Source: Oikopleura dioica
Lineage: Eukaryota > Animalia > Chordata
Length of the DNA: 35,216 bases
Direction of reading: 5' to 3'
Assembly: GCA_907165135.1 (NCBI GenBank)
Contig: CAJRAX010000012.1
Coordinates: 1-35,216 of the forward strand
Shown: in pieces, positions 5,701 through 33,871 of the stretch
How positions within the stretch are numbered: the stretch's first letter is position 1
How the letters are laid out: each line of letters starts with the position of its first letter
Made by a program: the position numbers and the translations under genes
Notes under the pieces: generated by a model
The model's input: only the letters and a program-made list of their open reading frames with translations
What the model was told of the DNA's origin: nothing
Databases searched by the model: none

Positions 5701-6382
5701 TCTGATGCGTTTTTGGCGTTTTTAGATGATGTTTGAGTTCATTTTAATCGAAAAAATATTCTGATGCGTTTTTTGGCGTTTTTAGAGGATGTTGAGTTCA
5801 TTTTCATCCAAAAATATTCTGATGCATTTTTTGGCGTTTTTAGATGATGTTGAGTTCATTTTCATCGAAAAATATTCTGATGCGTTTTTCGGCGTTTTTA
5901 GATGATGTTGAGTTCATTTTCATCGAAAAAATATTCTGATGCGTTTTTGGCGTTTTTAGATGATGTTGAGTTCATTTTCATCGAAAAATATTCTGATGCG
6001 TTTTTGGCGTTTTTAGATGATGTTGAGTTCATTTTCATCGGAAAAATATTCTGATGCGTTTTTTGGCGTTTTTAAATAATGTTGAGTTCATTTTCATCGA
6101 AAAAATATTCTGATGCGTTTTTGGCGTTTTTAAATGATGTTGAGTTCATTTTCATCGAAAATATATTCTGATGCGTTTTATGGCGTTTTAAGATGATGTT
6201 GAGTTCATTTTCATCGAAAAAATATTCTGATGCGTTTTTGGCGTTTTTGATGATGTTGAGTTCATTTTCATCGAAAAAGTATTCTGATGCGTTTTTGGCG
6301 TTTTTGATGATGTTGAGTTCATTTTCATCGAAAAAATATTCTGATGCGTTTTTCGGCCTTTTAAGATGATGTTGAGTTCATT
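2701..6382 (-). repeat. ~59-bp satellite, inverted orientation
   Basis: Monomers read as the reverse complement (GATGATGTTGAGTTCATTTTCATCGAAAAAATATTCTGATGCG...). Confidence 0.98.
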
Positions 6383-6391
6383 CATCTTCAA

Positions 6392-6573
6392 AACATCATC
6401 TTCAAAGGCCAAAAACGCATCAGAATATTTTTCGATGAGAATGAACTCAACATCATCTAAAAACGCCAAAAAACGCATCAGAATATTTTTGCGATGAAAA
6501 TGAACTCAACATCATCAAAAAACGCCAAAAACGCATCAGAATATTTTTTCGATTAAAATGAACTCAACATCAT
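6392..6573 (+). repeat. ~59-bp satellite, + orientation (3 monomers)
   Basis: Orientation flips back after a short filler at 6383-6391; ends in the element 1 TSD ATCAT (6569-6573). Confidence 0.95.
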
Positions 6574-7632
6574 TGATGCCAATTACTCTAATTTATGACT
6601 CTCTAATCTAACTGCGTCTTGCAAAGGATAAGGCCTTAAAATACGAAATGTGGCTTTATTATTTTGGTTATGAAGAGAGTGAAATTGCAATACAAATTTT
6701 TCAGAATTGCAAATTTTGCAGGTGCAAATATTTCCAAATAAGGCATTTCGCGCATTTCGCGCATATGTTTTTCTTTTCAATAATGACGCGGCGCTTTCGC
6801 GCCATTGTTATTTTCTTTTCATCAAATTGGTCGCAATCGCCACGCTCGTAATTATTGTTTTTTCTTGGTCAAAGTTAATTTAAAATCATATCAAGAGATC
6901 AACTTCCCACTATGTGGCCATATCACTCTTGATAGAATTTTTTATCAATTTTAATTTTACTTGGTCCAAGTCCGTTTCCATAATCGTTGTCAGTCCATTG
7001 CGTCGTCGTTGTCGTCGTTGTAGTAGCTGGAGGTGTCGCCGCCATCGTTGAAGCTGCAGTTTTGTCGGTTTTGAGGAAAATGGTCAGTAGTCCTAAAGCG
7101 AGCCAAAAAAGTGTTCAATCAATTTTGCCTACCAGGAGCACTTACAGACAGCGCCATCCCGCGGGTCACGGGGTCACACTGTCAAGCCGCAGGAGCGGAA
7201 CTCAGCTAGAGGATGATAATTCATGCAACAGCTCCGTTGAAATCATAGAAGAGAGCCAATTGAAGTATTTTCCTATAAGCAGAATAATGCATTTCCAAAG
7301 CAGTCCGAGTCGTTGTTGATATCAAGGAAGAGACGAATTGTTTCATCAAAAATAATTACCAGTCAGAAAGAATAAATTGAACACTAGAAAGTTAAATAAA
7401 ACCGCCGAAACGGGTGGCTAAGGTGCCTTTAGAGAATGTGAAATAACGCGTACGTTATAAATGAGAAATATAGATTTTGATGAACTCATGCTATCCAAAG
7501 ATTTGGCTCCATAAATCTTCAGTTCGTTTAACTAGTGATTTTCATGCAAAATCAACCTAATTGGCGAAATTCGGGCCGTGAGTGGAAGGATTCAATTTTT
7601 ATCTTTTATGTTCTTTTTCGCTATTCTTATCA
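6574..7632 (-). repeat. Element 1 3' LTR (1059 bp)
   Basis: Direct repeat of 13369-13971 with 4 substitutions over the 603 shared bp; termini TGATG/TATCA. Confidence 0.95.
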
Positions 7633-7706
7633 GTATGACCCGTTGTGGGTATCTTTTTTTATTATTATAATTTGGAGCTTCTTTTACGAAAAAAAACTAT
7701 TGAATC

Positions 7707-10700
7707 TTAAAATTTTGGTCCAAAAAAAAGCTCGTTGTTTTTTCTTAGATGATTTGGATACAGTTGTTCAAAGGAAATTTTAACAAATTCGATCATTTCA
7801 GTTTTGTTTTGAATAGCAGTTTTTGGAAGTTTGTATTCAGAAATCAGGACCTTTAATTCGGGTTTTGTCAAATCGTAAAGAGTTTTCTCCTTTTTCAAGT
7901 TTAGAACTGAAAAAAACAAAAACTCTCCAGATTCGCTTTTTCGCCAATTAGGGTGATTCTTTCGGATATACTCTCTTATTTTAATTCTTAATTCACCTAC
8001 AGATTCCGTTGTAGTATAAAAGACCTCAAACTTATACAAAATATACCTAAGGGCTTCTCTCGTTAGCTCTCCTAGTTTCAAAATACACCCTTTCTCAATG
8101 TCCTCATCCTCCCTAATTCGTTCTTCAATATTTTTGAAAAATTCAATATCCTTATTCTCAAATTTAAAAGCGATAGAAAGATTAAAATTTTGCTCACATA
8201 TCATTTCTGAACAATCACTGGCTTCAGAATAAGAATTTTCCATATCTAAAATTTCTAAATTTGGAATTTTTGAAGAGGGATTCGAATCTTTTGATGATTC
8301 TCTTTCTCTTTTTCGATCATTTTGTAGGCCTTCACCCTCGTTTGGATTACTTAATTCAAGTTCTCCCTCCCGATTAGCCGTTATGTCCAATTTGTCATAT
8401 GAAATTAGATGTTCCGAATTATTATCAATCTGATTATGAACCGTTTCTGTCTCAATTTCAGAATCAAGTGTGACTTCCCAATGAGAATGCTCTTCTATTT
8501 CCCATTCAGAATCACAAATCGAATTCGATTCTCGTGGCAAAAAATCGTCAGGTTTTGGGATCTCATCCATAATTGACGAATTTATAGTTCCATTTACCGT
8601 TATATTTTGGTTCTCTATAATTGAAACAATAGAGTCTTCTTCGTGAAAAGAGTCAATTGATTCTAGTGTTTCAATTATAAAATCTGTAAATATATTTTCA
8701 AAAATTCCTTCGACAGAAAGAGAGACGAGCTTTTCGTACGCATTCTCCAGAAACTTTTCCTCGGAAGATAAACTTACTGGGGAATACGAACAATTTGGAA
8801 AATTTTCATGGAATCCTGAAGAATAGTTTTCGGACGTTTCTGTATCATATTGAGCGTCGGGGGAAAAACTCGGAATGCCCGAGCTTACTGTAATTTCCTT
8901 CCTATCATTATATTTTTTGAGATGATCGGCGTGTCTCCGATATTCTTTTTCCCCAGATCTGACCGTGTACCACGTCCCCTCCGTGGAGCTACTAGTAACT
9001 TCATATGGGCCTAAAAAAGCTGGTTTTTTAGCGTGAAAATTTTTAATGAGAACTTGATCACCGACCTTATATTTAACAAATTTAGGATTAGAAAATTTTT
9101 CAAGCCTGATTTGCTTCTCTTCGTCCAATAATTTCTTGATCGATTCAAAATTAATTTGTTCTCGTTCATGGTAAATCCTGTAATTTGGGTCAAAAATATC
9201 ATGAGGGTGCTTAAATCCAAATTGAAGCGAGAATGGAGATGTTTTAGTGACCGAATGCTGTGAAGTATTTAAATCATGGACAATTTCTTGCAAAAATAAA
9301 TCCCAGTTTTTATAATCACATTTAGCTCGCAGTCTACTTTTTAGGGTTCTATTAAAATTTTCAACTTAACCATTTGTTGATGGATGTCTCGGTGGTGTAA
9401 AATGGGGCTCAATCGAATTTTCTTTCATAAATTTTTCCATTTCAGAATGCTCTCGAGCATTATCTAGAATAACCTTTTTTGGGAAATAAGGATTTTTGAA
9501 AATAATGCTCTTAAATTTTCCAAGAAGATATTTTGAATCTCGAGATTTAAGCGGTTCACAATAGCCAAATTTAGAGAAAAAATCAATCATAACTAAAACA
9601 TATTTATTTCCAAAATCAGTTGGAGGAAGCGTGATAAGGTCAAATCCAAAAACTTCGAAGGGTCCGTCTGGAGTTTTGAATGATAATATTGGAGCTTTAT
9701 TGGGATGAAAATTAGGCTTATCTTTCTGGCAAAACGGGCAAGTTTTTATAAATTCTTTTATACCATTACGCATTCGCGGCCAAATATATTTCATTGAAAT
9801 TTTTGCAAAAACTTGGTCGATTCCTGCGTGGCAATAGTCATGATAATTTTTTATTATTTCATTTTCGATATCCTTCGGCACGAGAACGCGACGATTATTA
9901 AATTCGTCAATGTAGGCTATTTCTCCACTTTCCAAAAAGGTCAATTTATCTCTCAAAAACGAATAAAAATTTATGTCCCCTTTGGGATTATTTGGCCATC
10001 TATCAATTTGCACGTATTTTCGAATTTCACTAAGTGTTGGGTCTAATTTTTGGATTTCACAAAATTTTTCTTGGGAAATTTGAATCGAATTAAGACTGAC
10101 CTTATGTGAATTATTTCTACTCAAACAATCGCTAATTTTCATTTTTGATGAAGATTTTTGAATAGTTCGAAAGCAGAATCCCTGAATTTCAGTAATCCAT
10201 CTAGCAATTTTTTGATTATTTGTCCTAAGCGATCTTATATATTTTATATTCGAATTGTCTGTTATCCAGTCGAATTCCGTATAAGAGAAATAAACAGCCC
10301 ATTTTGTCATACAAGTTTTTGCAGAGTATAATTCCTTTTCGATAATTGTGTACTTTGACTGTGTTTCATTAAAATTTCCACTATTATAACCAACAGGGAC
10401 CAAACAATCTGTAGAATGATGATGATTCTCGTCCCGACATTTTTGATCACAAATATACAGTACTCCGCCGTAGCCAAGAGAGGATGCATCTGTTTCTAAA
10501 ACAAAAACGCCTTGATCGGCTGGGGGAATTCTCAACTTCATTGCATTATTGCAAATTATTTCTTTGAGTTGTAAAAATGCTTGGGTGGCCTCATTCGTCC
10601 AGCAGAACGAATTTCTATATGTTTTTGTTATCGGTAATGCAATTGCCGCAAAATTTTTAATAAATCTTCTATGATAATTTAAAAGTCCAAAAAGACTTTG

Positions 10701-12365
10701 TGCACCTTCCTTAGACGTCGGGATTTTTAGGTTTTCAATCGCCTTGATTTTGTCTTTTGTTGGGGAAATTTCACCATTGGAAATAAAATAGCCGCAAAAA
10801 TTTACAGACCGCGTAAAAAACGAAGCTTTTCGTGAATGAATACGCAAATTATTAGCATCAAGAATCATGAAAAATTTCTTTAAATTTAATAAATGCTCCT
10901 CTTCCGTTTTGCTATGAACTAAAAGATCATCCATATAGGGTAAAATTGCTGTTTTATCTACCCCTTTCAAGGCTTGGTCAATGATTCGCATGAAAAAAGC
11001 GGGCGCATTGCGGCAGCCCATCGGCATTCTCAAAAATCTAAATTGGCCGTGTTCAGTCGTAAACGCTGTCTTGTTTTTCGACTCTTCAGTCAATTCTATT
11101 TGATGAAAGCCTTTGATGAGATCGACCGAACTAAAAATTTTGCTATTCTCCAAATAAGATAGTGAGTCTTCTAAATTTGGCAAGGGATGATGAATTTGTA
11201 TTGTTGCATCGTTAAGCTTTCGAAAATCAATTACGAGGCGCCATCGCCCGTCTTTTTTTCTGACCAATATTGCAGGGCTATTCCAGGGGCTCGTACATTT
11301 TTCGATTATTTTATTCCCCGTAAATTTATCCAAAATATTTTTCCATTCCCGACGCAAACTAAATGGTTGTCTATAAGGCTGTGAAGAAATCGGGCACTGT
11401 GTATTTGTATCAATTGAAAATTTTTCAATAGAACACGCAGGAAGGGGATCATCATCATCAAGAAATAAATGTGTAACAATGTCTAAAAGGGCGTAAAAAT
11501 CTTTTTCTACTTCTGGCGAGTTAATTTTACCGACTGAGATATTTTCCATATTTTTATTATTTGTGTTTTTGATTTGGGCAATTTCGACTATTTCATGTAA
11601 TTTAGCAAAAACTGTTCCAGCTGGAATACGAATTGTTGTGTCTGTTGGATTAATAACGAGTAACCGAAAAATTGGGGAGTCTTTATCAACAATTTGTAAA
11701 CTTGGAATAAGTTGCAGTTTTGAATTTCCGAGATTTGAATTTTCAAACGAGAGACTCATAGTTTTATTGAAATTTTTAACCGAAAGATCAATTAATCTTT
11801 CTGATTTTCCTCTGAAGGAAAACGTTTCTGTTGAGAATGCGTCATATTCTTCAATCGACTCATTTCTTAAATTATCAGTAGCATTTTCATCCGAACTAAT
11901 TAAATTAAGATTCGCGAACCGTTCAACCGGGCCTGCTTGAATCAATTTTTTACGATGAAGATTTATCAAAATTTCATTATCAAGAATCGCTGGCACTCCC
12001 AAAATAGGGCTAAGGTTATCCGAGACCACATAAAACCAGGACTTCCCCCAGGAAACATTTTCAATAATAAATTCGGTTTCGATTTTGCCAAAAATTTCAA
12101 TTTTTCCGCCGGTATAATTAACCGCCTCCATTTTTGTTTTTTCAATTTTTTTGTTTTTTGGAACATATTTTTTACAAATACAATTTAATTGTGAGCCTGT
12201 GTCAAGTAAAAAACGTACATGTGAATCAAAAATTTTAGCATTTACAAAAAATTGCTCGCCAATTTTATTTACAGAAATTTTCGGGATTGAAATTTGACCA
12301 GAATTTGTCCCGAAATTTAGTTTTTTTGCTCGACAGATCCCTGTTTCTCCCGACGCTTCAAACAA
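7707..12365 (-). pseudogene. pol: Element 1 pol (protease, RT, RNase H, integrase, GPY motif, long C-terminal tail) with one premature stop
   Basis: FLLDTGSQ (PR, ~12201), SPWNSP/LVIDFRKLN/YMDD (RT, YMDD 10926-10937), ETDASSLGYGGVL (RH), H-H-C-C zinc finger, FDLITLP..LDNARE..NG*VE (DDE), FLGPY (~9004-9012). ORFs 9366-12365 and 7707-9293 are in the same frame, split only by TAA at 9366-9368 (probable CAA>TAA). Confidence 0.93.
12279..12326 (-). promoter_or_regulatory. Putative -1 ribosomal frameshift signal gag/pol (A AAA AAC plus stem-loop)
   Basis: Heptamer A AAA AAC (12326-12320) directly before the gag TAA; pol is in the -1 frame; hairpin TTTCGGGA/TCCCGAAA plus AAATT/AATTT with loop CTGGTCA. 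Confidence 0.8.
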
Positions 12366-13328
12366 TTTCTAGAAATGTGACCAAACCCATCACATTCAAA
12401 ACATTTAATCTTAGGGCAACGCGGTTTAGTATGACCCCATTGATTACAATTACGACAGAAAGGGCTGCTCTGGGGAGTCTGGGGATATCCAAATGGATAT
12501 GGGGGGAATTGCCGAGGGCGTTTGGGGCACGGGCTTATTTGTGATCTCCCTCTTTTCAATTTCGAGCTTTGCTACAGTCGCAGTCAACTGTTTGATCATG
12601 TCTGAGAGCTCTGAATTTTTGCGCTCATAATTAGCTTCCATTTGAGCGAGTCTTGAGTCAAGAATTTCACTTGTCTGATCGACAAAAGAGGCTAAATTCG
12701 TTTCAATCGAGGAAACACTGACACTCAAGAACCGCTCTCTGGAATCCAAAAAATCAGCAACTTCCTGAGCACTCTTTCTGTTATACCCATGATCTCGAAG
12801 AAATGACTTGTTGGCCGGTTCCAAACTTTTCATAAAATGAGCATCTGTTATAAACGAAACAGCGTCTGGTTTATCAGAAATAATTCCTGCAACCGTACGA
12901 ATTCTCGTCAAATAAGAACCGAATTTTTCATTCATTTCGGACCGACGAGCCATATTTTCGAGTTCATTTTGGGCCCGCTCCCGCTTCTCGTCCTCAGTTT
13001 CCTTGCCAAAAATAGTCTCTAAAAATTCAAAGGCCTTTTTCTCGGTCTCTAAATTTGCCATTTCCCGCCCGTGATTGCAAATAAAATCATGAGAGCAATT
13101 ATTCCGAATACAGTCAACCGCCTGTCTTTCAAAAGCTTTTTCTAATTCAGCCCGATCGGACTCACGGTTATGATCTTGAATTGATTTTAAAAACAATTTT
13201 TCATGGCCGAAATTTTGTCAATCAAATTATTTTTAGAAATTTGAAATTCATAAGAAAGCATTTTTGGCCGAAAATGTTGCCGAGAATTGAGGGAAGGGAA
13301 TGGGGCAAAGAGAAAATCTTCGGGCCAT
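12317..13328 (-). pseudogene. gag: Element 1 gag (frameshifted)
   Basis: Pieces in three frames align with element 2 Gag. Knuckles CRNCNQWGHTKPRC and CFECDGFGHISRNC (CX2CX4HX4C). Frameshifts near 13195 and in the G6 run 12501-12506. Start codon ambiguous (13328 or 13369). Confidence 0.85.
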
Positions 13329-13352
13329 TTTGTTACCTTGAAATTGGAGTCG

Positions 13353-13368
13353 CCGCTAGTGGTCACCA
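13353..13368 (-). promoter_or_regulatory. Primer-binding site, tRNA-Trp type
   Basis: TGGTGACCACTAGCGG directly after the 5' LTR; TGGTGACC is complementary to the GGUCACCA 3' end of eukaryotic tRNA-Trp. Confidence 0.8.
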
Positions 13369-13971
13369 TGATGCCAATTACTCTAATTTATGACTCTCTA
13401 ATCTAACTGCGTCTTGCAAAGGATGAGGCCTTAAAATACGAAATGTGGCTTTATTATTTTAGTTATGAAGAGAGTGAAATTGCAATACAAATTTTTCAGA
13501 ATTGCAAATTTTGCAGGTGCAAATATTTCCAAATAAGGCATTTCGCGCATTTCGCGCATATGTTTTTCTTTTCAATAATGACGCGGCGCTTTCGCGCCAT
13601 TGTTATTTTCTTTTCATCAAATTGGTCGCAATCGCCACGCTCGTAATTATTGTTTTTTCTTGGTCAAAGAGACGAATTGTTTCATCAAAAATAATTACCA
13701 GTCAGAAAGAATAAATTGAACACTAGAAATTTAAATAAAACCGCCGAAACGGGTGGCTAAGGTGCCTTTAGAGAATGTGAAATAACGCGTACGTTATAAA
13801 TGAGAAATAAAGATTTTGATGAACTCATGCTATCCAAAGATTTGGCTCCATAAATCTTCAGTTCGTTTAACTAGTGATTTTCATGCAAAATCAACCTAAT
13901 TGGCGAAATTCGGGCCGTGAGTGGAAGGATTCAATTTTTATCTTTTATGTTCTTTTTCGCTATTCTTATCA
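13369..13971 (-). repeat. Element 1 5' LTR (603 bp, internal 456-bp deletion)
   Basis: Matches 6574-6874 joined to 7331-7632 at a shared AAG. Confidence 0.95.
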
Positions 13972-14379
13972 ATCATCTAAAAACGCCAAAAAACGCATCA
14001 GAATATTTTTGCGATGAAAATGAACTCAACATCATCTAAAATTGCCAAAAAACGCATTAGAATATTTTTTCGATGAAAATGAACTCAACATCATCTAAAA
14101 ACGCCAAAAAACGCATCAGAATATTTTTTCGATGAAAATGAACTTAACATCATCTAAAAACGCCAGAAAACGCATCAGAATATTTTTTCGATGAAAATGA
14201 ACTCAACATCATCTAGAAACGCCAAAAAACGCATCAGAATATTTTTTCGATGAAAATGAGTTCAACATCATCTAAAAACGCCAAAAAACGCATCAGAATA
14301 TTTTTTCGATTAAAATGTACTCAACATCATCTAAAAACGCCGAAAAACGCATCAGAATATTTTTGCGATGAAAATGAAA
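13972..14379 (+). repeat. ~59-bp satellite, + orientation
   Basis: Resumes at TSD ATCAT; about 7 monomers up to the inversion junction. Confidence 0.97.
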
Positions 14380-15228
14380 TTTTTGGCGTTTTTAGATGAT
14401 GTTGAGTTCATTTTCATCGAGAAAAGATTCTGATGCGTTTTTTGGCGTTTTAAGATGATGTTGAGTTCATTTTCATTGAAAAAATATTCTGATGCGTTTT
14501 TTGGCGTTTTTAGATGATAAGAGTTCATTTTCATCGAAAAAATATTCTGATGCGTTTTTGGCGTTTTTAGATGATGTTGAGTTCATTTTCATCGAAAAAA
14601 TATTCTGATGCGTTTTTTGGCGTTTTTAGATGATGTTGAGTTCATTAACATCGGAAAAATATTCTGATGCATTTTTGGCGTTTTTAGATGATGTTGAGTT
14701 CATTTTCATCGAAAAATATTCTGATGCGTTTTTTGGCGTTTTTAAAATAATGTTGAGTTCATTTTCATCGAAAATATATTCTGATGCGTTTTATGGCCTT
14801 TTAAGATGATGTTGAGTTCATTTTCATCGAAAAAATATTCTGATGCGTTTTTTGACGTTTTTAGATAATGTTGAGTTCATTTTCATTAAAAAAATATTCT
14901 GATGCGTTTTTTGGCGTTTTTAGATGATGTTGAGTTCATTTTTATCGAAAAATATTCTGATGCGTTTTTTGGCGTTTTTAGATGATGTTGAGTTCATTTT
15001 AATCGAAAAAATATTCTGATGCGTTTTCTGGCGCTTTTAGATGATGTTGAGTTCATTTTCATCGAAAAAATATTCTGATGCGTTTTTTGGCGTTTTTAGA
15101 TGATGTTGAGTTCATTCTCATCGAAAAAATATTCTGATGCGTTTTTCGGCGTTTTTAGATGATGTTGAGTTCATTTTCATCGAAAAAATATTCTGATGCG
15201 TTTTTCGGCCTTTTAAGATGATGTTGAG
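14380..15228 (-). repeat. ~59-bp satellite, inverted orientation
   Basis: Reverse-complement monomers ending in the element 2 TSD TTGAG (15224-15228). Confidence 0.97.
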
Positions 15229-16380
15229 TGATACCTAATATGAAAAAAAAATAATATACTGAATCGCCAAATCACGGCCAAAATAAAAAATTATGCATGA
15301 TTTCACAAGCTTACATTAAATGCTAATCAAGTTGATTAGGCCTCGTCAAAAATCAAGAAAAAATATGGCAAACCAAAAAAAAATAGAAAAAATAAAGGTT
15401 TGATGATTAGACTGAGGGTAATTTCTAGCATGAGAACGCTAGAAAAATTGTTAACAGTATTTGCACGTACGCGTGTGTTCACATATTTCTAGGCACATTA
15501 GCCAGCCCTTTTGATATTTTACGATTCAAAAGGTTTTATTATTAATCCCTTTTAGGTTTAAAATTATTTACGCATGAATTTATCTCACGATCTTCAAAAT
15601 CAACTATCCTTACAATATTCTTGTTTTTTCTTTATTTATTTGCTTTCAAAATAAGTTGACTGTACTTGGACGACAAATCTTTTTGGACGCCGTTGGAAGA
15701 CTCCTTCTTACTGTTGAGCTTCCCGTAAGGGCTGAACGCTAAGTAGCCGCGGGCAGAATATCCCGAACCGGCAAAAAGCGTTTATAAGCGCTCACAGGTA
15801 ATCGAACTCGCCGAGGACCGGTTACTGCTTTTCTAGGAAACTGACCATTTTCGACATTGCAGTTACACGTGCGCGTGACGCCGACCCGACAAGAACGACA
15901 ACGACGACATCTACTACTACGACAACGACGACGGAAACCCTGCCTGGACCGACAATGGAATTCTGACAACAACAACGACTAATGCCCTGGAATTTGTCGA
16001 GACTTGTAATAAAACAGTGGGTCACATAGTGAGAAAGCTGTTTTATTACAAGTTTTGGCAAAAAGCGCCACCTATGGCGAATTGATAAAAATAGGAATTT
16101 TTCAAAAATATCGTAACATATTATATAATTATCTGAAATTGATGTTACGAACACAGATGATGAAAGTTTGCCGATAACGCCTTACGTAAGAAGCCACAAT
16201 GGCCGAAATGGCCCCATTTACGAAAACAATAGAAAAATCCGGAACCAACCGGTTTCCGAAATGGAACTTTTCAAAATTTGAAATTTCAAAAATCATTCTC
16301 GATTATCAATAAAACCACCACCAGCTTATTTTATTTTTCGTGTTCTTTGCAAGGATTTTAGCAAGCCGCAATTTGTATCA
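15229..16380 (+). repeat. Element 2 5' LTR (1152 bp)
   Basis: 15399-16380 is repeated at 19060-20043 with 4 substitutions and 2 single-base indels. Confidence 0.94.
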
Positions 16381-17650
16381 GTGATGACCACAGAGACCGA
16401 ATCCACAGAGGCGAAGCCGATTATAATGGCAGAAAGTAAGTCAGCTCCATTTCCCGAGGAAATTTTGATGGCCAGTCTGTCCCCTTTATCTGGATCTCAG
16501 TTGATTTCACCGTCCAGTCAGTTGTATCAGTTCCAATTGAATATGAGTATTTTAGAGGATAGGTTGTGTCAATTTAGCGCTCTTTTTGAAAGAAGTCTGA
16601 AGGACTTTTCTCGAACGGAGGACTCAGATTTAAAGGCTCAATTTGAGCGAAAGCTTTTAAATTGTATTCGTAGTTCTTGCTCTGAAGAATTTCTAGTGCA
16701 ATATGGCCGGGACTTAGCCAATGAAACTTGTTACAAAAAGGCTCTTGAGCTTTTGAGGGAGATTTTTTGGGGAGGAAAGCGAATCTGACAGAAAAGCGCG
16801 AGCGACGGATGAATTCGAAAATTTGGTCCGAAGGACCGATTTGAATGAAATATTCGTTTCATTCTTGAGAAGAATTAAATCGCTTGCGCGACAGATTGAT
16901 AACCGTAAAGACGCGGTTGATTTTTTGGTCGAAAATAAGTTTAAAAAATTTCTTGAGCCCGCAAATTTGAGTTTTTTACGCGATCATAAAATGCAAAACT
17001 CGAGCGCAGAAAAAATCGCTGAATTTTTAGACGAACGGGAAAGACATTGTCTGGCCCAAGTTTCAGCGGTTAACACTGATCGAATGAATTCATTTATTGA
17101 TCAAACTTCGGAAATGTTATCTAAGCAACTGGAAGCATTTAATGAGAGTAATAAAAAGAGTCAAGAGGCTCATGAAAAGAAAAATGAGGAACTTTCGAAG
17201 GCCCTCAAAGATTTGACAGCGACTGTGAACGAATTGAAGTTAGAAAAACAGAAAAATTCTGATAACAATTCTATCACGAAGCAACCTTTTTCGCGAGAGC
17301 AAAATTATCGTCAGGGCGATTTTAATACTTTCCGAAATCCTCAGAATTTTCGTCAAGCAGGGTTTAGTCCTCCTCCAGGTTACCCTCAAAATTTTCAAAA
17401 TTTTCAAAATCTAGGAGCGCCCCGCAACTTTCAGATGCAACAGAGTCGCCCTGTTTTGTTTTGTTCTGAATGTGGTAAATTCGGGCACATGAAACGTAAT
17501 TGCCGATTTATCGAGTGCCATGGCTGTGGACAAAAAGGACACATTCAACGCTTTTGTCAGAGAAACAATAATTATGGTCAAAATAATAATCGAGATAATA
17601 GGAATTTCCCTCCCTTTTCGCGTGGTTCGGGAAACGGGTACTCGGGTTGA
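16381..17650 (+). pseudogene. gag: Element 2 gag (one frameshift)
   Basis: ORFs 16381-16788 and 16823-17650 join if one T is removed from T6 at 16763-16768 (EIFGEESESDRKARA). Knuckles CSECGKFGHMKRNC and CHGCGQKGHIQRFC. Q/N-rich linker. Confidence 0.9.
16382..16391 (+). promoter_or_regulatory. Degenerate PBS (tRNA-Trp type)
   Basis: TGATGACCAC one base after the LTR versus TGGTGACCAC in element 1 (G>A in the triplet that pairs with the tRNA CCA). Confidence 0.65.
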
Positions 17651-17674
17651 GCTCTGGTCAAGCTTTCAATCCGA
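17629..17674 (+). promoter_or_regulatory. Putative -1 frameshift signal (G GGA AAC plus stem-loop)
   Basis: Heptamer 17629-17635 in the gag frame; the -1 frame reads SSGQAFNPK, homologous to element 1 NSGQISIPK; stem 17642-17653 with 17661-17674, loop CTGGTCA. Confidence 0.8.
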
Positions 17675-19063
17675 AAACTTTTGTTAGTTCTGTAAAAGTT
17701 TAGGTCGCCAACATTTTATTGATGCTCACATTTTTAACAAAAACGTAAAATTGATGATTGATACAGGCTCACAGATAAATCTTATTGGACGTGAGTATGT
17801 GCCTGATTCAGAAAAAATATACAAAAATGATTTAAAAATTTTCGCGTATAATAATACTATTGTTCCTGTTGTTGGATATATATTGACAGATTTAATTATT
17901 GATGGACAAAACTGGGGTCGCGCGCGATTCTATGTTGTTAATGATCGATTGAACTGTATTTTGGGAACTTCTTCAATCGAGGAGCTTGAACTTATTATTA
18001 ATCTTCATCGCAAGAGATTGATTAAAGGCGGTGCGATTGAACGATTTGCAAATATTTCTGAAATAACAGTAGAGCCAGACAAGGGTGAAAATGAACAGTT
18101 AGAGGGTATTCTTATGGATACTATTACTTTAAAACCAAGAACAGAACAATTAGTAGATTTACATGTTCGAAACATAAAAAACTGTCGTCATTATTTTTTG
18201 AAAACTCGTGTCTTAAAAACTGTAAATTAGAATTTCTCCCCTCCTTGCAAGAAGTCTCGCCTGATTCACCAATATTTCGCATATTGATTCTTAACATGAC
18301 GGATTCTTCAATAAAACTTGATAAAGGGACAAAACTAGAAGAGATTTTTGAAGTATGTAAAGTCGGTCAGATTAAAGAGGAAGCAGTTGAAGAAATTCTT
18401 CAAAATATAAAAGTTGGCCCGATTTCGAGTGAAAATAAGCCAAAATTTTTTGATCTTATGAAAGAGTTTTGCTATCTTTTATTAAAAGAAGGAGATTATA
18501 TACCGGAATGTTCAATTGCCGAATTCAATATAGATACCATTGATTCTGTCCCTTCTGTATCTCAGCCATATAGAACAGCCTTTGCGTTACGGCAAACTAT
18601 GTGGGATATTCTGAATAATTATTTGGAGAATAAAGTTATCGAGCCCTGTATATCAGTATGGAATTCTCCATGTTTGTTAGTAAGAAAAAAAGGTGGATCT
18701 TGGCGCCTCGTAGTTGACTACAGAAAATTGAATCAGAATACTCATCAGTTTCATTATCCGCTACCATCGCTTGAAGATTCTATTTCTTATATGCAAAATA
18801 GCAAAATATTTAGCGCATGCGATCTGTATAAGGGATTCCATCAGGTTCGAATTAGCCCGAAGTCTGCTGATAAAACGGCATTTTCAACTTAACACGGCCA
18901 ATTTAGATTTTTAAGAATGCCGATGGGTCTAAAAAATTCCCCTTGTTTTTTTATGCTTGTAATGGATAAGGCTCTTGAAAATATCCCAAAGTCAGCTGTC
19001 CTAGCTTACATGGATGATGTTTGTATTCATAGCGTTTTAGAGGCTGAACATTTAGTTAATTTG
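17629..19063 (+). pseudogene. pol: Element 2 truncated pol (PR, spacer, RT to YMDD)
   Basis: MIDTGSQ, SVWNSPC, LVVDYRKLN, YMDD. Frameshifts near 17700 and ~18180, in-frame TAA at 18890-18892. RH and IN deleted. Confidence 0.92.
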
Positions 19064-20043
19064 ATGATTAGACTGAGGGTAATTTCTAGTATGAGAACGC
19101 TAGAAAAATTGTTAACAGTATTTGCACGTACGCGTGTGTTCACATATTTCTAGGCACATTAGCCAGCCCTTTTGATATCTTACGATTCAAAAGGTTTTAT
19201 TATTAATCCCTTTTAGGTTTAAAATTATTTACGCATGAATTTATCTCACGATCTTCAAAATCAACTATCCTTACAATATTCTTGTTTTTTTCTTTATTTA
19301 TTTGCTTTCAAAATAAGTTGACTGTACTTGGACGACAAATCTTTTTGGACGCCGTTGGAAGACTCCTTCTTACTGTTGAGCTTCCCGTAAGGGCTGAACG
19401 CTAAGTAGCCGCGGGCAGAATATCCCAAACCGGCAAAAAGCGTTTATAAGCGCTCACAGGTAATCGAACTCGCCGAGGACCGGTTACTGCTTTTCTAGGA
19501 AACTGACCATTTTCGACATTGCAGTTACACGTGCGCGTGACGCCGACCCGACAAGAACGACAACGACGACATCTACTACTACGACAACGACGACGGAAAC
19601 CCTGCCTGGACCGACAATGGAATTCTGACAACAACAACGACTAATGCCCTGGAATTTGTCGAGACTTGTAATAAAACAGTGGGTCACATAGTGAGAAAGC
19701 TGTTTTATTACAAGTTTTTGGCAAAAAGCGCCACCTATGGCGAATTGATAAAAATAGGAATTTTTCAAAAATATCGTAACATATTATATAATTATCTGAA
19801 ATTGATGTTACGAACACAGATGATGAAAGTTTGCCGATACCGCCTTACGTAAGAAGCCACAATGGCCGAAATGGCCCCATTTACGAAAACAATAGAAAAA
19901 TCCGGAACCAACCGGTTTCCGAAATGGAACTTTTCAAAATTTGAAATTTCAAAAATCATTCTCGATTATCAATAAAACCACCACCAGCTTATTTTATTTT
20001 TCGTGTTCTTTGCAAGGATTTTAGCAAGCCGCAATTTGTATCA
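19060..20043 (+). repeat. Element 2 3' LTR remnant (first 170 bp missing)
   Basis: Begins at TTTGATG, equivalent to 15399; ends TATCA plus TSD. Confidence 0.93.
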
Positions 20044-26000: not shown

Positions 26001-26699
26001 GGCGTTTTAAGATGATGTTGAGTTCATTTTCATCGAAAAAATATTCTGATAACATTTTTGGCGCTTTTAGATGATGTTGAGTTCATTTTAATCACAAAAA
26101 TATTATGATGCGTTTTTGGCGTTTTTAGATGATGTTGAGTTCATTTTCATTGCTCAAAAATATTCTGATGCGTTTTTTTGCGTTTTTAGATGATGTTGAG
26201 TTCATTTTCATCGAAAAAATATTCTGATGCGTTTTTGGCGTTTTTTTGTGATGATGTTGAGTTCATTTTCATCGGAAAAATATTCTGATGCGTTTTTTGG
26301 CGTTTTTAGATGATGTTAAGTTCATTTAAATCGGAAAAATATTCTGATGCATTTTTGGCGTTTTTAGATGATGTTGAGTTCATTTTCATCGAAAAATATT
26401 CTGATGCGTTTTTGGCGTTTTTAGATGATGTTGAGTTCATTTTCATCGAAAAATATTCTGATGCGTTTTTCGGGTTTTAAGATGATGTTGAGTTCTATTT
26501 TCATCGGAAAAATATTCTGATGCGTTTTTCGGCGTTTAAAGATGATGTTGAGTTCATTTTCATCTAAAAAATATTCTGATAAAGTTTTTGGCGATTTTAG
26601 ATGATGTTGAGTTCATTTTAATCGAATTGACAAAAAAATATTCTGATGCGTTTTCAGGCGTTTTTAGATGATGTTGAGTTCCATTTTCATCGAGAAAAG
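20044..26699 (-). repeat. ~59-bp satellite, inverted orientation (~6.6 kb)
   Basis: Reverse-complement monomers, very homogeneous until ~25900, then increasingly irregular. Confidence 0.98.
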
Positions 26700-26716
26700 C
26701 CGTAGTTGAAAAAGCT

Positions 26717-29700
26717 GCATCAGAATATTTTTCGATGAAAATGAACTCAACATCATCTTAAAACGCCAAAAACGCATTAGAATATTTTTCGATGAAAATG
26801 AACTCAACATTATCTAAAAACGCCAAAAACGCATCAGAATATTTTTCGATGAAAATGAACTCAACATCAATGAAGGAAAAGGCCAAAAACGCATCAGAAT
26901 TTATTTTTTCGATGAAAATGAACTCAACATCATTTCGCAAAAACTTCCAAAAACGCATCAGAATATTTTTTCGATGACAATGAACTCAACATCATTCGAC
27001 AAAACGCAAAAAACGCATCAGAATATTTTTTCGATGAAAATGAACTCAACATCATCTAAAAACGCCAAAAACGCATCAGAATATTTTTCCGATGAAAATG
27101 AACTCAACATCATCAAAAACGCCAAAAACGCATCAGAATATTTTTTCAATGAAAATGAACTCAACATCATCTAAAAACGCCAAAAAAGCATAAGAATATT
27201 TTTATGATGAAAATGAACTCAACATCATTTTAAAACGCCAAAAACGCATCAGAATATTTTTTCGATGACAATGAACTCAACATTATCTAAAAACGCCAAA
27301 AACGCATCAGTGTTATTTTTTCGATGAAAATGAACTCAACATCATCTTAAAAGGCCAAAAACGCATCAGAATATTTTTCGATGAAAATGAACTCAACATC
27401 ATTTTAAAAACGCCAAAAACGCATCAGAATATTTTTTCGATGAAAATGAACTCAACATCATCTGAAAAACGCCAAAAATGCATCCGAATATTTTTCCGAT
27501 AAATGAACTCAACATCATCTAAAAACGCCAAAAACGCATCAGCGCTTTTTTCGATGAAAATGAACTCAACATCATCTAAAAACGCCAAAAGCGCATCAGA
27601 ATATTTTTTGATGAAAATGAACTCAACATCATCTAAAAACGCCAAAAACGCTATCGATATTTTTTCAATGAAAATGAACTCAACATCATCTTTAAACGCC
27701 AAAAACGCATCAGAATATTTTCTCGATGAAAATGAACTCAACATCATCTAAAAACGCCAAAAACGCATCAGAATATTTTTCGATGAAAATGAACTCAACA
27801 TTATCTAAAAACGCCAAAAACGCATCAGAATATTTTTTCGATGAAAATGGGGTTCAACATCATCTTAAAACGCCAAAAACGCATCAGAATATTTTTTCGA
27901 TTAAAATGAACTCAACATCATCTTAAAACGCCAAAAACGCATCAGAATATTTTTGCGATGAAAATGAACTCAACATCATCTAAAATTGCCAAAAACGCAC
28001 TCGAATATTTATTTCGATGAAAATGAACTCAACATCATCTAAAAACGCCAAAAACGCATCAGAATTTTTTTCGATGAAAATGAACTCAACATTATCTAAA
28101 AACGCCAAAAACGCATCTTATTTTTTCGATGAAAATGAACTCGACATCATTTTAAAACGAAAAACGCATCAGAATATTTTTCGACCTAAATGAACTCAAC
28201 ATCATCTGAAAACGCCAAAAACGCATCAGAATTTTTTCGATGAAAATGAACTCAACATCATCTAAAAACGCCAAAAACGCATCAGAATATTTTTTCGATG
28301 AAAATGAACTCAACATCATCTGAAAAACGCCAAAAACGCATGGAATTTTTTTCTGCATGAAAATGAACTCAACATCATCTTAAACGCTCAAAAACGCATC
28401 AGAATCTTTTCTCGATGAAAATGAACTCAACATCATCTAAAACGCCCAAAAAGGGTGCATCAGAATATTTTTATGATGAAAATGAACTCAACATCATATC
28501 TAAAAACGCCAAAAACGCATCAGAATATTTTTTCGATGAAAATGAACTCAACATCATCTTAAAACGCCAAAAACGCATCAGAATTTTTTTCGATTAAAAT
28601 GAACTCAACATCATCTTAAAACGCCAAAAACGCATCAGAATATTTTTGCGATGAAAATGAACTCAACATCATCTAAAATGTGAAAAACGTTTCAGAATAT
28701 TTTTCGATGAAAATGAACTCAACATCATCTGAAAACGCCAAAAACGCATCAGAATATTTTTCCGATGAAAATGAACTCAACATCATCTGAAAAACGCGGG
28801 GAAAAACGCATCAGAATATTTTTTCGATGAAAATGAACTCAACATCATCTAAAAACGCAAGAAAGCATCAGAATATTTTTTCGGAAAATGAAAATGAACT
28901 CAACATCATCTTAAATTTTTCAAAAACGCATCTTCGAATTTTTCGATTAAAATGAACTCATTCATCATTTTGAAAACAAATCAACGCAAGTAAGAGCATA
29001 TTGCTTTTCGATGAGTCATGAACTCAACATCAATCTATAAAACGCCAAAAACGCATCAGAAGGTTTTTTCGATGAAAATGAACTCAACATCATCTTAAAA
29101 CGCCAAGTGCGCATCAGAATATTTTTCAAAATGAAAATAAACTCAACATTCATTCTTTTTCAAAACGCATCAGAATATTTTTCGATGAGAATGAACTCAA
29201 CATCATCTAAAAACGCCAAAAACGCATCAGAATGGTTTAATGAAAATGAACTCAACATCATCTAAAAACGCCAAAAACGCATCAAATCTTTTTTCAATGA
29301 AAATGAACTCAACGATCATCTAAAACGCCAAAAACGCATCATCAAGAATTTTTAATTAAAATGAACTCAACATCATGTAAAAACGAAAAACGATCAGAAT
29401 ATTTTTCGATGGCCATGATTAATTTCAACATAATCTTATAAACGCCAAAAACGCATCAGAATATTTTTTTAATGAAAATGAACTCAACATCATCTAGAAA
29501 ACGCCAAAAACGCATCAGAATTTTTTTCGATTAAAATGAACTCAACATCATCTTAAAACGCCGAAAACTGCATTTGAATACCTTTTTCGAATAGGAAATG
29601 AACTGTAAGACATTCATCGCTTAAAACATCTAAAACGCATACGAATATTTTCTTCATTGTTTTAATGTACTCAACATCATCTAAAACGCCAACAAACGCA

Positions 29701-30432
29701 GTCGAACTTTCTCGATGAAAATGAACTCAACATCATCAAAAACGCTCCAACAATTTCGCATCAGAATAACTCTTTTTTTTCGATGGAAATGAACTCAACA
29801 TCATCTGAGAAAACGCCAAAAACGCATCAGAATAATTTTTCGATAAAAATGAACTCAACATCATCAAAAACGCCAAAAACGCATCAGAATATTTTTCGAT
29901 AAAATGAACTCAACATCATCTAAAAACGCATCAGAATTTTTTGCGATGAAAATGAACTCAACATCATCAAAAACGCCAAAAACGCATCAAAATTTCCGTC
30001 CATTTTCGATTAAAATGAACTCAACATCATCTTAAAACGCCAAAAACGCATCAGAATATTTTTGCGATGAATGAACTCAACATCATCGAAAATTGGAAAA
30101 ACGCATCAGAATATTTTATCGATGAAAATGAACTCAACATCATCTAAAAACGCTTTAAAAAACGCATCAGAATATATTTTTCGATTAAAATGAACTCAAC
30201 ATCATCTAAAAACGCCAAAAACGCATCAGAACGCTTTTTTCGATGAAAATGAACTCAACATTATCTAAAAACGCCAAAAACGCATCAGAAAATTTTTTCG
30301 ATGTCCTTGAACTCAACATCATCTTAAAAGGCCAAAATCGTCATCAGAATATTTTTTCGATGAAAATGAACTCAACATCATTTAAAAACGCCAAAAAATG
30401 CATCCGAATATTTTTCCGATGTAAATGAACTC
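26717..30432 (+). repeat. ~59-bp satellite, + orientation, error-rich or diverged
   Basis: Same monomer with many non-recurrent indels and scrambled patches. Confidence 0.95.
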
Positions 30433-31513
30433 TGATGCCAATTAGCTGCAAATTAGTTCTCTAAGCTAGAATCCTGCGAAGAATGAGGCTAAAATTCGAA
30501 ACGTGGCTGTATTATTTTGGGTTTGAAGAGAGTGATTTTTAAATTTTCAAAATTTCAATTTCGCATTTCGCGCAGGTGCTATTACTTCCAAGTAAGGCGC
30601 AGCGCATTTCGCGCCGATGTTTTTCTTTCCAAATTAGGCGCAGCGCTTTCGCGCATTTGTTTTCTTCGCTGATTTCAATTTCGCTCCAACAGCCACGTTC
30701 GCTTCAAATTTTATCGCAAGAATCGAATTTAATCAATAAGTTCAATTTCCAACTATGTTGCCATATCCCTTATCAATAAAAATTCTATTCGTTCATATTT
30801 TTACCAAAGCCAGTTCCATGTTCGTTGTCAGTCCATTGCGTTGTCGTTGTCGTTGAAGAAGAAGTCGCCGCCATTGTTGAAGCTGCAGTTTTGTCGGTTT
30901 TAAGGAGAATTTTCAGTTAATCCTAAAGCGAGGAAAAAAGGTGATCAATCAATTTTGCCTACCAGGAGCACTTACAGACAGCGCCATCCCGAGGAGCACG
31001 GGGTCAACACTGTTCAAGCCGCTTAAAGCGGAACTCACTTAGAGGATGAATTTATCATGCAACAGCTTCGTTGTAGTTGAAGAAGAATACCAATTGATTC
31101 GTCCAATATGTCGAAAAGATTTTTGTTGTCGTTTGTAAGAGTCAGCTTGATTCATCAATTAATAATTTGAAGAGCTCGAATATTGAAAAACTAAAGTGTG
31201 AGCACATGTCTTTCAATAAAATCAGAGCCAAGAATACTGGATAGAATTTGATTCTCCCCAGCAGACAACTGAAAACCGTCGAAACGGGTGGCTAATATTG
31301 ACCTTTTGAGTCGAAATAACGCGTACGTTATGAAGGAAAAATAGAATTTTATGAACTCATGCAATATCCGAGATTTGGATCGTAAAAATCATCAGAACAA
31401 TTTAACCGTGAATTTCATGATTTCAACCTAATTGGCTGAAAAAATTTGTGAGAAGTAAATTTGAAAATTTTTATTTTTTTCTCTTGGTTCTTTCCCGTCA
31501 CTTCTTAGTATCA
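30433..31513 (-). mobile_element. Second copy of the solo LTR at 425-1442 (same insertion site)
   Basis: Same TSD AACTC and the same flanking variant monomers (TGCATCCGAATATTTTTCCGATGTAAATGAACTC). First ~470 bp nearly identical, remainder noisy. Confidence 0.92.
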
Positions 31514-32467
31514 AACTCAACATCATCTAAAAACGCCTTGCATCAGATTATTTTTTCGATGAAAATGAACTCAACTTTCATCTAAAAACGCCAAAAACGC
31601 ATGGGCAATTTTTTCGATGAAAATGAACTCAACATCATCTAACGACGCCAAAAACGCATCAGAATATCTTTTCAATGAAAATGAACTCAATTTCATGGCC
31701 TTCGCCAAAAACGCATCAGAATTTTCTTGATGATCTGATGAACTCAACATCATCTAAAAACGCCAAAAATTGCATCAGTCGTTTTCTTTCGATTAAAATG
31801 AACTCAAGTTTTCATCTGCTTCGCGAAAAACGCATCAGAATATTTTTTCGATGAAAATGAACTTAGCATCATTTTGAAACGCCGAAAAACGCATGGAGAA
31901 TGTTTTTCCGATGAAAATGAACTCAACATCATCTCAAAAGGCTTCGAAAAACGCATCAGAATATCCTTTTTCGATGAAAATGAACTCAACATCATCTTAA
32001 AAACGAGAAAAAATTCATCAGAATATTTTTTCGATGAAAATGAACTCAACATCATCTAAAAACGCCAAAAACGCTTCAGATTTTTTTTTCGATGAAAATG
32101 AACTCAACATCATCTAAAAACGCTGAAAAACGCATCAGAATATTTTTTCGATTAAAATGAACTCAACATCATCTAAAAACGCCAAAAACGCATCAGAATA
32201 TTCCTTTTTCGATGAAAATGAACTCAACATCATCAAAAAACGCCTGAAAAACGCATCAGAATACTTTTTTAAATGAAAATGAACTCAACATTATCTAAAA
32301 ACGCCAAAAACGCATCAGAATATTTTTTCGATGAAAATGAACGTCAATTTTCATCTTGAAAAAGGCCATAAAACGCATCAGAATATATTTTCGATGAAAA
32401 TGAACTCAACATCATTTTAAAAACGCCAAAAAACGCATCAGTTGTATTCTTTCGATGAAAATGAACT
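31514..32467 (+). repeat. ~59-bp satellite, + orientation; noisy copy of 1443-2382
   Basis: Same succession of variant monomers (ATATCTTTTCAATG, TTCTTGATG, TTTAAATG..CATTATCT, GGCCATAAAACGCATCAGAATATATTTTC). Confidence 0.93.
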
Positions 32468-33744
32468 TGATACCTTTTCTGAGTCTCTTTTACTGCTGAT
32501 TGCAATTAACTATCAATTTTTAATCAAATTTTCTGCAAGAAAATACAAGAAAATATATTTTGCGGCGTTCAGAGGGAGATTTATTGTGAGACTGATTCAA
32601 AATAAAATTTGGCGGTGAGCGAAAATTTTAGCAGGTGCGCGAAAATGCATAACAAAGGCGAAAACAAAGACATAAACAAATGAAATTTCCTTTTTTGGAA
32701 ATAAGGCGCTTCAAGTTCATCCGGTGTATTTTTGAATCCATTTCGGATTTTGTATCTTCTTGCGGTTCGAGCCGGGTTCCCGAGCCGGAAGGGTTGAGTT
32801 TTCCAAAGTGAAGCGTTTTCTGAGTTTTTTCCGCCCAAAGAAGCCATTTTTTGTAAAAGAAGTAATTAGAATAAAGAATGTGAACATTTTAAAATAAAAT
32901 AATTTATAATCAAAATTGGTCAGTTATTTTAATCATAAATTAAGCGCAAAAGGTGATAACATAAATTAACAAGCATAAATAAAATTACAGTAAGAATTAA
33001 ATCACATAAAAATTACAGGTTAATAAAATCATATTAAAATTACAGTTAAAATAAAAATAACTTCGGCTCACCTTTCGGCAGTTACTGACGCAGTTCCCTT
33101 TGCCTTGGTAATTCGCGTCAAGCCTTATCGTTAATAAGGAACCGAAAAGGTCTCCCGTATCTGCTCAATCGCCCAAGGAGTGCTTTGTGAAGTTGATGAG
33201 TATGAAAGGAATGAAGAAGGAAAGATGACGGGAAGGTAGGACCCGTTTTCGTCGTCCGCGTCGATAGAGCATAGTCGTTGTTGATTTCAAATTAAACAGA
33301 ACAGAGTGAGAGCAAATCTATAGAATTAATGAAACAGGAGCAATCAGCGAATTTTTAACAATTATGCCAAAGTGAGGCAACATGCGAATTTGAAAATAAT
33401 TTTCATGCCATAATTTGCAAGCGGTTAGGGTTTTACATTGCTACAGTAGGAAGCTTTGCGTTAGAAAAAATGATTCTGAAATAATAAATGAACAGTAAGT
33501 ATGAAAGCACGCTTTATTTTTCCCCTAACCAAAGATTTTAAAGGATCTAAAGAAGATTTGATGAGAGCATTGTTGAGCGGAATAATCGACGCTATCTTTT
33601 TGAGTGAATTGACAAATTCAGATTTCGAATAAAATGAATTTTGGCCGTGAATCAGAACTACGACGGGTTGGAACTATTTTTCTTCCATTATTTTTTCCCG
33701 ATAAAGCACGTAGTTGAAGAGCAGCTGTTTCCCTAGTGGTATTA
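32468..33744 (-). repeat. Element 3 putative 3' LTR (~1277 bp)
   Basis: Left TGATACC and right GGTATTA form a 7-bp inverted repeat with one mismatch. The right boundary is inferred from a 20-nt flank motif shared with element 1; the partner LTR is not visible. Confidence 0.65.
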
Positions 33745-33871
33745 CTGTGACCACTCATGGGTATTTTCATTTTTTTTTTTTTTTAAAAGCGGGGAGGTGA
33801 ATCATTTTGCGATAAATTTCGGACGTTTTAGAGATCTAACGCAAAAGATATTTCATTTTTATTCGAAATCT

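Follow-up and report, generated by a model that had tools for sequence, protein, structure and literature searches.

Target choice by long terminal repeat (LTR) elements is, to our knowledge, understood for only a few tethers, namely chromodomains, the Ty1, Ty3 and Ty5 motifs, and LEDGF or BET in the case of retroviruses, all of which act via host proteins. Gypsy lineages are known to carry targeting modules after the GPY/F motif of the integrase, and the chromodomain is an established chromatin tether. Here we describe a C-terminal module of a different kind, encoded in a 35,216-nucleotide stretch of the Oikopleura dioica genome (assembly GCA_907165135.1, contig CAJRAX010000012.1, positions 1 to 35,216 of the forward strand; hereafter the window), in which Gypsy elements lie within a 59-bp satellite. 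A preliminary description of the window had drawn attention to the tail of the Pol polyprotein of two of them, elements 1 and 3. Our reading, to which we assign a probability of roughly 0.6, is that this tail is a selected, SAP-like duplicated domain that defines a Gypsy clade and that would tether to DNA, biasing integration to the satellite.

The tail occupies the same place as the chromodomain of chromoviral (Ty3/Gypsy) integrases, as an extra C-terminal module after GPY/F, but its fold is unrelated and it represents a separate acquisition, not a swap within the chromoviruses. In the yeast elements the insertion-site determinant likewise lies in the integrase C-terminus (Ty1-AC40, Ty5-Sir4, Ty3-TFIIIB); these determinants bind host proteins through short peptides or surfaces, whereas the tail is predicted to be a folded domain of ~130 residues resembling a DNA binder. 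With the SAP domains of Ku70, PIAS1, SAF-A/E1B-AP5, Tho1, Hcc-1, 3'hExo, SLX4 and FAN1 the tail units share a helix-extended loop-helix of ~35-45 residues, the hydrophobic pattern and a lysine where helix 2 begins. However, they are longer (~58 residues), their second helix spans 15 residues, their P-x-[WH]-x-K loop is conserved and strands close each unit; two units pack, in the predicted structure, into one domain at the end of a retrotransposon Pol. The LEM, HeH (helix-extension-helix) and Rho_N domains of emerin, LAP2, Src1/Heh1 and Rho belong to the same two-helix fold class (Z 3.6-5.6), but the sequence signal of the tail is weaker for them than for SAP, and LEM acts by binding BAF, which nothing here suggests. 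Both the fold class and the idea of a C-terminal integrase tether are known. The openly accessible literature searched yielded no account of a retrotransposon integrase with a SAP-type domain, nor one of the combination reported here, a duplicated strand-capped SAP-like domain that follows a long acidic linker and is diagnostic of a Gypsy clade.

Coding context of the Pol tail

Element 1 is a Ty3/Gypsy (Metaviridae-like) element by its protease-reverse transcriptase (RT)-RNase H-integrase (IN) order, H2C2 zinc finger, rve core, GPY/F region, LTRs and 5-bp target duplication. The position given earlier for its tail, 7707-8204, is correct once the coding strand is added: it is the minus strand, the plus-strand frames across this interval being riddled with stops. 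The tail makes up the final 165 residues of a 528-residue open reading frame (ORF) at 7707-9293 on the minus strand. The GPY motif occupies residues 95-97 of this frame (9003-9011), and 431 residues therefore lie downstream of it, in line with the ~400 counted in the preliminary description. A single in-frame TAA within the integrase core separates this frame from the upstream Pol frame, in which Pfam recognizes protease, RT, RNase H, the H2C2 zinc finger and the integrase core; the tail frame is intact despite this stop. The Pol features of elements 1 and 3 are the following, with the confidence of the lead-in given as the predicted local distance difference test (pLDDT).

7707-8204, minus strand: Pol tail of element 1, 165 residues plus the TAA stop (7707-7709), conserved with element 3 and with the relative P0001
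7908-8093, minus strand: SAP-like unit A of element 1 (ORF residues 401-462), with strand, helix, extended loop, helix, P-x-W-x-K loop and strand
7719-7895, minus strand: SAP-like unit B of element 1 (ORF residues 467-525), matching unit A in profile-profile comparison
8094-8204, minus strand: lead-in segment of element 1 (residues 364-400), a short strand and an acidic helix, pLDDT 52-65
8205-8903, minus strand: acidic Ser-rich linker of element 1 (residues 131-363), poorly conserved
8904-9293, minus strand: integrase C-terminal region of element 1, containing GPY
9366-12365, minus strand: upstream Pol frame of element 1 with the Pfam domains, ending at the in-frame TAA (9366-9368)
33872-34378, minus strand: Pol tail of element 3, with unit A at 34091-34276 and unit B at 33902-34078
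33872-35206, minus strand: Pol of element 3, which runs off the window end

Conservation, internal duplication and selection

BLASTP comparison of elements 1 and 3 aligned only the last ~200 residues of each (33% identity, 230 columns, E 2e-31), reproducing the earlier observation that the acidic linker is unalignable between them and the final ~165 residues are conserved. Two repeats of ~56 residues had also been proposed within the tail; the four repeat strings quoted are exact and the units are homologous, with a measured length nearer to ~58 residues. Pairwise detection of the repeat within single sequences proved too weak to be used, the local alignment of the A and B halves giving z values of 1.0-3.2 against shuffles, and relatives were therefore gathered for profile-profile comparison. 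A word-indexed search returned one relative, P0001, which gave a three-sequence alignment with elements 1 and 3. An exhaustive HMMER search of 1.84 billion cluster representatives with the three-sequence profile yielded 42 matches at E<=1e-3, including at least one false positive (P0036, a bacterial amidase with seven weak matches from Y_Y_Y/PKD repeats, which was rejected as a family member). The 23 tails with good coverage constitute alignment A2, and their A and B units together constitute the 46-unit alignment A3. Comparison of the 23 A units with the 23 B units gave an hhalign probability of 98.8% (E 9.3e-17, 55 columns), which is decisive: the tail domain is an ancient internal duplication.

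Conservation along the 528-residue frame is uneven. Mean identity to element 1 among 14 relatives is 0.32-0.50 in the integrase C-terminal region (residues 1-120), drops to 0.26 at the integrase/linker junction, and is 0.12-0.33 in the linker as against 0.31-0.56 in the tail. The linker (residues 131-365) has a net charge of -40 and an isoelectric point (pI) of 4.1; the tail core (residues 401-528) has a pI of 9.5, with 9.5 for unit A and 9.4 for unit B of element 1 and family-wide medians of 9.1 and 9.3 for the two units. The ratio of nonsynonymous to synonymous substitution rates (dN/dS) between two natural intact copies on the metagenome contig L004 is 0.04 in RT-RNase H, 0.05 in the integrase, 0.47 in the linker and 0.10 in the tail core, with dS lower in the 3' part of the gene. 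The tail is under purifying selection. The lead-in before unit A shows a pattern (F-K-F-E-N ... F-F ... I-E) that is kept in the closer relatives only; its low-confidence strand and helix may be a third element of the domain.

Predicted fold and kinship to SAP domains

The AlphaFold2 model of the 165-residue tail, built on the three-sequence alignment, has a pLDDT of 78.8, and each half forms a strand-helix-loop-helix-strand. Both units would make up one globular domain in this model (predicted template modelling score 0.76), a packing that depends on an alignment of three sequences. The single-unit model, built on A3, has a pLDDT of 95.4 and comprises a strand (4-6), a helix (12-21), an extended loop, a second helix (32-46) and a closing strand (58-61), and so displays in prediction the helix-extended loop-helix of ~35 residues that characterizes SAP domains. 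The HeH fold (SAP, LEM, Rho-N) suggested in the preliminary description is thus upheld by AlphaFold and by structure search, except that the units are not bare two-helix motifs, since N- and C-terminal strands cap each of them.

The whole two-unit domain had no match above a template modelling score of 0.36 in PDB, AFDB clusters or the ESM Atlas; single units alone did match. A Foldseek search of PDB with the unit placed the SAP domain of 3'hExo at the top (39 residues, 1.6 A), with the SAP-like domain of MANF/CDNF (44 residues, 1.9 A), the emerin LEM domain and T4 endonuclease VII among the other matches, and a search of Swiss-Prot models returned MANF (probability 0.99), Src1/Heh1, Arabidopsis ARP and FAN1. 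VIA, a structural search independent of Foldseek and covering 48,161 chains, gave Z scores above 5 for the Hcc-1 SAP domain (5.8), the Rho N-terminal domain (5.6), CDNF (5.3) and the emerin LEM domain (5.2), followed at Z 4-5.1 by the SAP domains of SF3B2, E1B-AP5, PIAS1, MKL1, Tho1, SLX4 and FAN1. The LEM domain of LAP2 was also among the matches, which overall cover 39-48 residues at Z 4-5.9 and 1.6-2.8 A. No single match is strong statistically, as is common for so short a motif, yet the list consists almost entirely of one fold class (SAP, LEM, Rho-N).

The tails of elements 1 and 3 match neither a chromodomain, of which no pattern had been seen before either, nor any other Pfam family at E<=1. 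Among distant members, Pfam SAP (PF02037) covers unit A of P0039 with 22.7 bits (E 7e-5), under the gathering cut-off of 23.9 bits, and it also matches P0032 (20.4) and P0033 (15.4); all three matches span the whole Pfam model. Other Pfam matches among the 23 members were SAP_new25 in two and, weakly, Rho_N in three. When the 46-unit profile was compared with PDB sequences, the Ku70 SAP domain came first, with per-domain E values of 0.0016 in 1jjr and 0.018 in full-length Ku70 (the E value of 2e-10 for 1jjr arises because the sequence is doubled in that entry). It was followed by 2rno, deposited merely as 'Putative DNA-binding protein', by emerin LEM and by Rho. Emerin LEM reached a sequence E value of 0.24-0.41 and a structure Z of 4.9-5.2, and no Pfam LEM match was present among the 23 members. 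Language-model comparison placed the whole tail, and likewise each unit, next to SAP, Rho_N and HeH clusters (0.78-0.86), which serve as leads only. By sequence, the evidence for kinship to SAP is transitive and near threshold; together with the predicted structure, it makes SAP-like HeH units the accepted best reading of the tail.

Distribution of the tail among Gypsy elements

All long matches are Gypsy Pols with the domain at their extreme end. They come without exception from ENA, JGI or Logan metagenome assemblies (seawater, Tara), are unnamed and lack entries in UniProt and NCBI. With the exception of P0036, every match examined has the tail either as the very last part of a Gypsy Pol or following an acidic linker. 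Conservation of the tail extends over at least 34 Pol clusters, with identity as low as ~22%, and in all of them it is C-terminal and in frame. Shorter matches (72-353 residues) were considered as free-standing host proteins and rejected: each one read has an acidic linker or an integrase end upstream and is therefore a Pol fragment.

A search with RT-IN of element 1 returned ~40 relatives at 35-69% identity, after which identity drops to <=29% (ordinary Gypsy Pols). The A2 profile detected the tail in 27 proteins from this search (P0059-P0172) and in none of the more distant ones. In the RT-IN tree of 98 rows (quick search, LG+G4, with some long-branch warnings outside the tail-bearing clade), the tail is present in 34 of the 39 rows of one clade (Shimodaira-Hasegawa-like approximate likelihood ratio test, SH-aLRT, 100; stem length 0.53) and in 0 of 59 outgroup rows. 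The remaining clade rows are two truncated proteins (P0076 and P0078), one that ends just past the start of unit A (P0088), and a basal pair with divergent SAP-like sequences (P0090 and P0093). Homologs of the tail, sought in other Gypsy integrases as the preliminary description had proposed, occur across one clade and in no outgroup row. As a marker, the tail singles out one well-separated clade of Gypsy elements, recorded solely in this genome and in marine/seawater metagenome contigs.

The eight chromodomain-bearing rows occupy the opposite half of the tree, and chromodomains are lacking from the outgroups closest to the clade. PF00385 does not occur in the precomputed Pfam annotation of members of the tail-bearing clade, which by this marker is not chromoviral. 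The preliminary description held that the tail replaces the chromodomain as the integration tether. As history this is not supported: the clade is not nested among chromodomain-bearing Pols, and the tail is therefore at most an analogous, independently acquired C-terminal module.

Insertion sites in the satellite

The host satellite has a 59-bp monomer with 31% GC. Four independent insertions in the window could be placed in it, two of them with LTRs delimited as below; a further solo LTR at 30433-31513 was left out of the count as it belongs to a segmental duplicate.

425-1442: solo LTR, 5-bp duplication AACTC
6574-13971: element 1 (El1), 5-bp duplication ATCAT at 6569-6573 and 13972-13976, inside the satellite
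6574-7632, minus strand: LTR of element 1 on the low-coordinate side, including an extra 453 bp at 6875-7327 (self-BLAST)
13369-13971, minus strand: LTR of element 1 on the high-coordinate side, without the 453 bp
15229-20043, plus strand: element 2 (El2), duplication TTGAG, which is CTCAA on the other strand
from 32468: element 3 (El3), flank GAACT
32468-33871, minus strand: downstream region and LTR of element 3, adjoining the satellite at 32467/32468

All four insertions fall in one 14-bp stretch of the monomer, GAACTCAACATCAT, and share one orientation relative to it, with a rough chance probability of 0.002-0.007 for shared phase and orientation. This shows that the elements integrate site-selectively, a property in which we infer a part for the tail; the insertion pattern is consistent with targeting without assigning targeting to the tail. 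The flanks of metagenomic relatives could not extend the comparison: L007 and L008 are collapsed, their ends repeating exactly, and L002-L004 are head-to-tail arrays, so that their flanks are unusable. The element on L005 lies in AT-rich DNA with short mixed repeats.

Several further observations concern these insertions and their surroundings. On either side of the 453-bp piece, the LTRs of element 1 share 99.3% identity (self-BLAST); the piece itself is present in one LTR only and represents an LTR-internal insertion or deletion within an otherwise young element. The frames of element 2 comprise gag, protease and the start of RT, with a stop at ~18892, and the LTR match resumes at 19060; an internal deletion has taken away the remainder of Pol, with any tail that it had, together with ~170 bp of the 3' LTR, and the TTGAG duplication is intact. 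The segmental duplicate (1-1188 and 30005-31205, 95.8% identity) consists of satellite and the solo LTR (425-1442 and 30433-31513), which is 77-81% identical to the element 1 LTR. The satellite itself flips orientation at ~2700, 6382-6392, 14378-14380 and 26698-26717, in head-to-head or tail-to-tail junctions, and GC and AT skews switch sign at these flips.

Discussion

Pol of the tail-bearing clade ends in an integrase (H2C2, catalytic core and GPY/F region), an acidic and presumably disordered linker, and a basic globular module of ~130 residues, which, as the comparison of its two halves shows, is the product of a duplicated SAP-type unit, a helix-extended loop-helix with two short closing strands. 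SAP domains prefer AT-rich or scaffold/matrix attachment region DNA. The basic module would bind DNA in the same manner and, once bound, would hold the pre-integration complex on the 31%-GC satellite, biasing integration there; which base pairs within the monomer are used would be determined by the integrase core, by local DNA shape, or by both acting together. We infer a DNA or chromatin tether from SAP kinship, from the family-wide basic charge and from the position after GPY/F, and steering of insertion into the satellite is a plausible role for the tail. A more specific version, in which the duplicated module directly recognizes the 59-bp monomer, with each unit contacting one A-tract cluster, and sets the phase and orientation of insertion together with the integrase, can be put forward only tentatively.

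Several points weigh against this reading. The structural matches are all short and score low (Foldseek E>0.2, Z<6), as is common for a 45-residue motif, and they are not decisive. The tails of elements 1 and 3 have no Pfam SAP match (E<=10), and since even the best score in the family (P0039) stays below the curated cut-off, the units are not formal members of PF02037. SAP-fold domains also bind RNA (3'hExo) or proteins (MANF-BiP, LEM-BAF). An insertion window of 14 bp is too narrow to be explained by a flexible ~230-residue linker alone, and the build-up of elements in the satellite could partly reflect survival rather than choice. Among the four insertions, the tail is demonstrated for El1 and El3 alone, El2 being internally deleted and the solo LTR having no Pol. 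The link to a satellite is seen in this genome only: no metagenome contig contains the satellite of the window, and usable flanks are absent.

That the tail should be no more than an accidental open frame or a functionless, decayed read-through is hardly conceivable. Element 1 is indeed defective, with its stop in the integrase core, and none of the reads from four RNA runs under the same species label aligned to 7633-12400 at >=95%, an absence that does not count against expression; but the tail is conserved in frame at the C-terminus across the Pol clusters, its core has a dN/dS of 0.10 and its fold is predicted with confidence; conservation, clade distribution and dN/dS together refute the idea. 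Conservation and selection show function without saying which, however, and the module might serve another step, such as binding of the element's own RNA or cDNA ends, intasome assembly, nuclear entry or countering of the acidic linker. The SAP fold of 3'hExo, the top Foldseek match, binds RNA, and Rho-N is part of an RNA-binding region. We nevertheless hold such a role to be unlikely, as the C-terminal add-ons that have been studied after GPY/F of Gypsy integrases are targeting devices and the tail-bearing elements show a narrow target window.

Targeting could also proceed through a host protein of chromatin or the nuclear envelope that marks satellite heterochromatin, in the manner of LEM-BAF or MANF-BiP. 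The emerin and LAP2 LEM domains and MANF/CDNF rank high among the structural matches, a protein tether would go well with a long linker, and the known integrase tethers (chromodomain, Ty1, Ty3, Ty5) act through host proteins. Against this, the sequence signal is that of SAP (Ku70, PF02037) and not LEM, the domain is strongly basic, and insertions specific in phase and orientation argue for readout of DNA sequence somewhere in the complex, so that we regard a host-protein tether as distinctly unlikely. The SAP likeness itself would be convergent if the unit belonged to another strand-helix-helix-strand fold, for example that of LysM-like phage baseplate modules. The order of its elements recalls LysM, several phage or tailocin baseplate chains were found at Z 4.1-5.3, and no match attains Z 6. 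Yet the baseplate matches span only model residues 5-49, that is, the helices without the closing strand, and the top PDB sequence match is the Ku70 SAP domain, which makes an unrelated fold very improbable. LysM in particular was rejected: Pfam LysM has no match in the 23 members (E<=10), whereas SAP, SAP_new25 and Rho_N appear.

If a DNA tether is the correct explanation, a self-encoded, folded and probably DNA-binding integrase module would be a different solution to target choice. Direct readout of the monomer, if true, would make this the first LTR retrotransposon lineage with integration both satellite-specific and sequence-specific that is encoded by its own DNA-binding domain, and its elements would be active builders of the satellite/subtelomere landscape in a marine organism. 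The targeting idea lends itself to direct testing, since the domain is small and confidently predicted to fold and a specific 59-bp sequence is available as the candidate ligand. Profiles A2 and A3 also provide a sequence marker by which this unnamed Gypsy clade, widespread in marine metagenomes, can be recognized.

Other features of tail-bearing elements

Three further features were noted in metagenomic relatives. Residues 235-327 of P0020, between the protease and RT of a tail-bearing Pol, give a sub-threshold match to dUTPase (20.3 bits against 22). The contigs L004 (1-19180), L002 and L003 contain head-to-tail arrays of diverged tail-bearing elements with 79-88% identity between copies and one LTR-like spacer of ~720-760 bp between the pol stop and the next gag; these could be real tandem arrays or repeated insertions at the same site. 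Elements of a distant subclade carry a third ORF of 618-835 residues that begins at or just past the pol stop, directly behind the SAP-like tail. It matches no Pfam family and might be env-like, and the elements of the window have no such ORF. Its positions are as follows.

L005, 10644-13103: third ORF of the distant subclade
L006, 4650-6506: third ORF of the distant subclade
L010, 6083-8590: third ORF of the distant subclade

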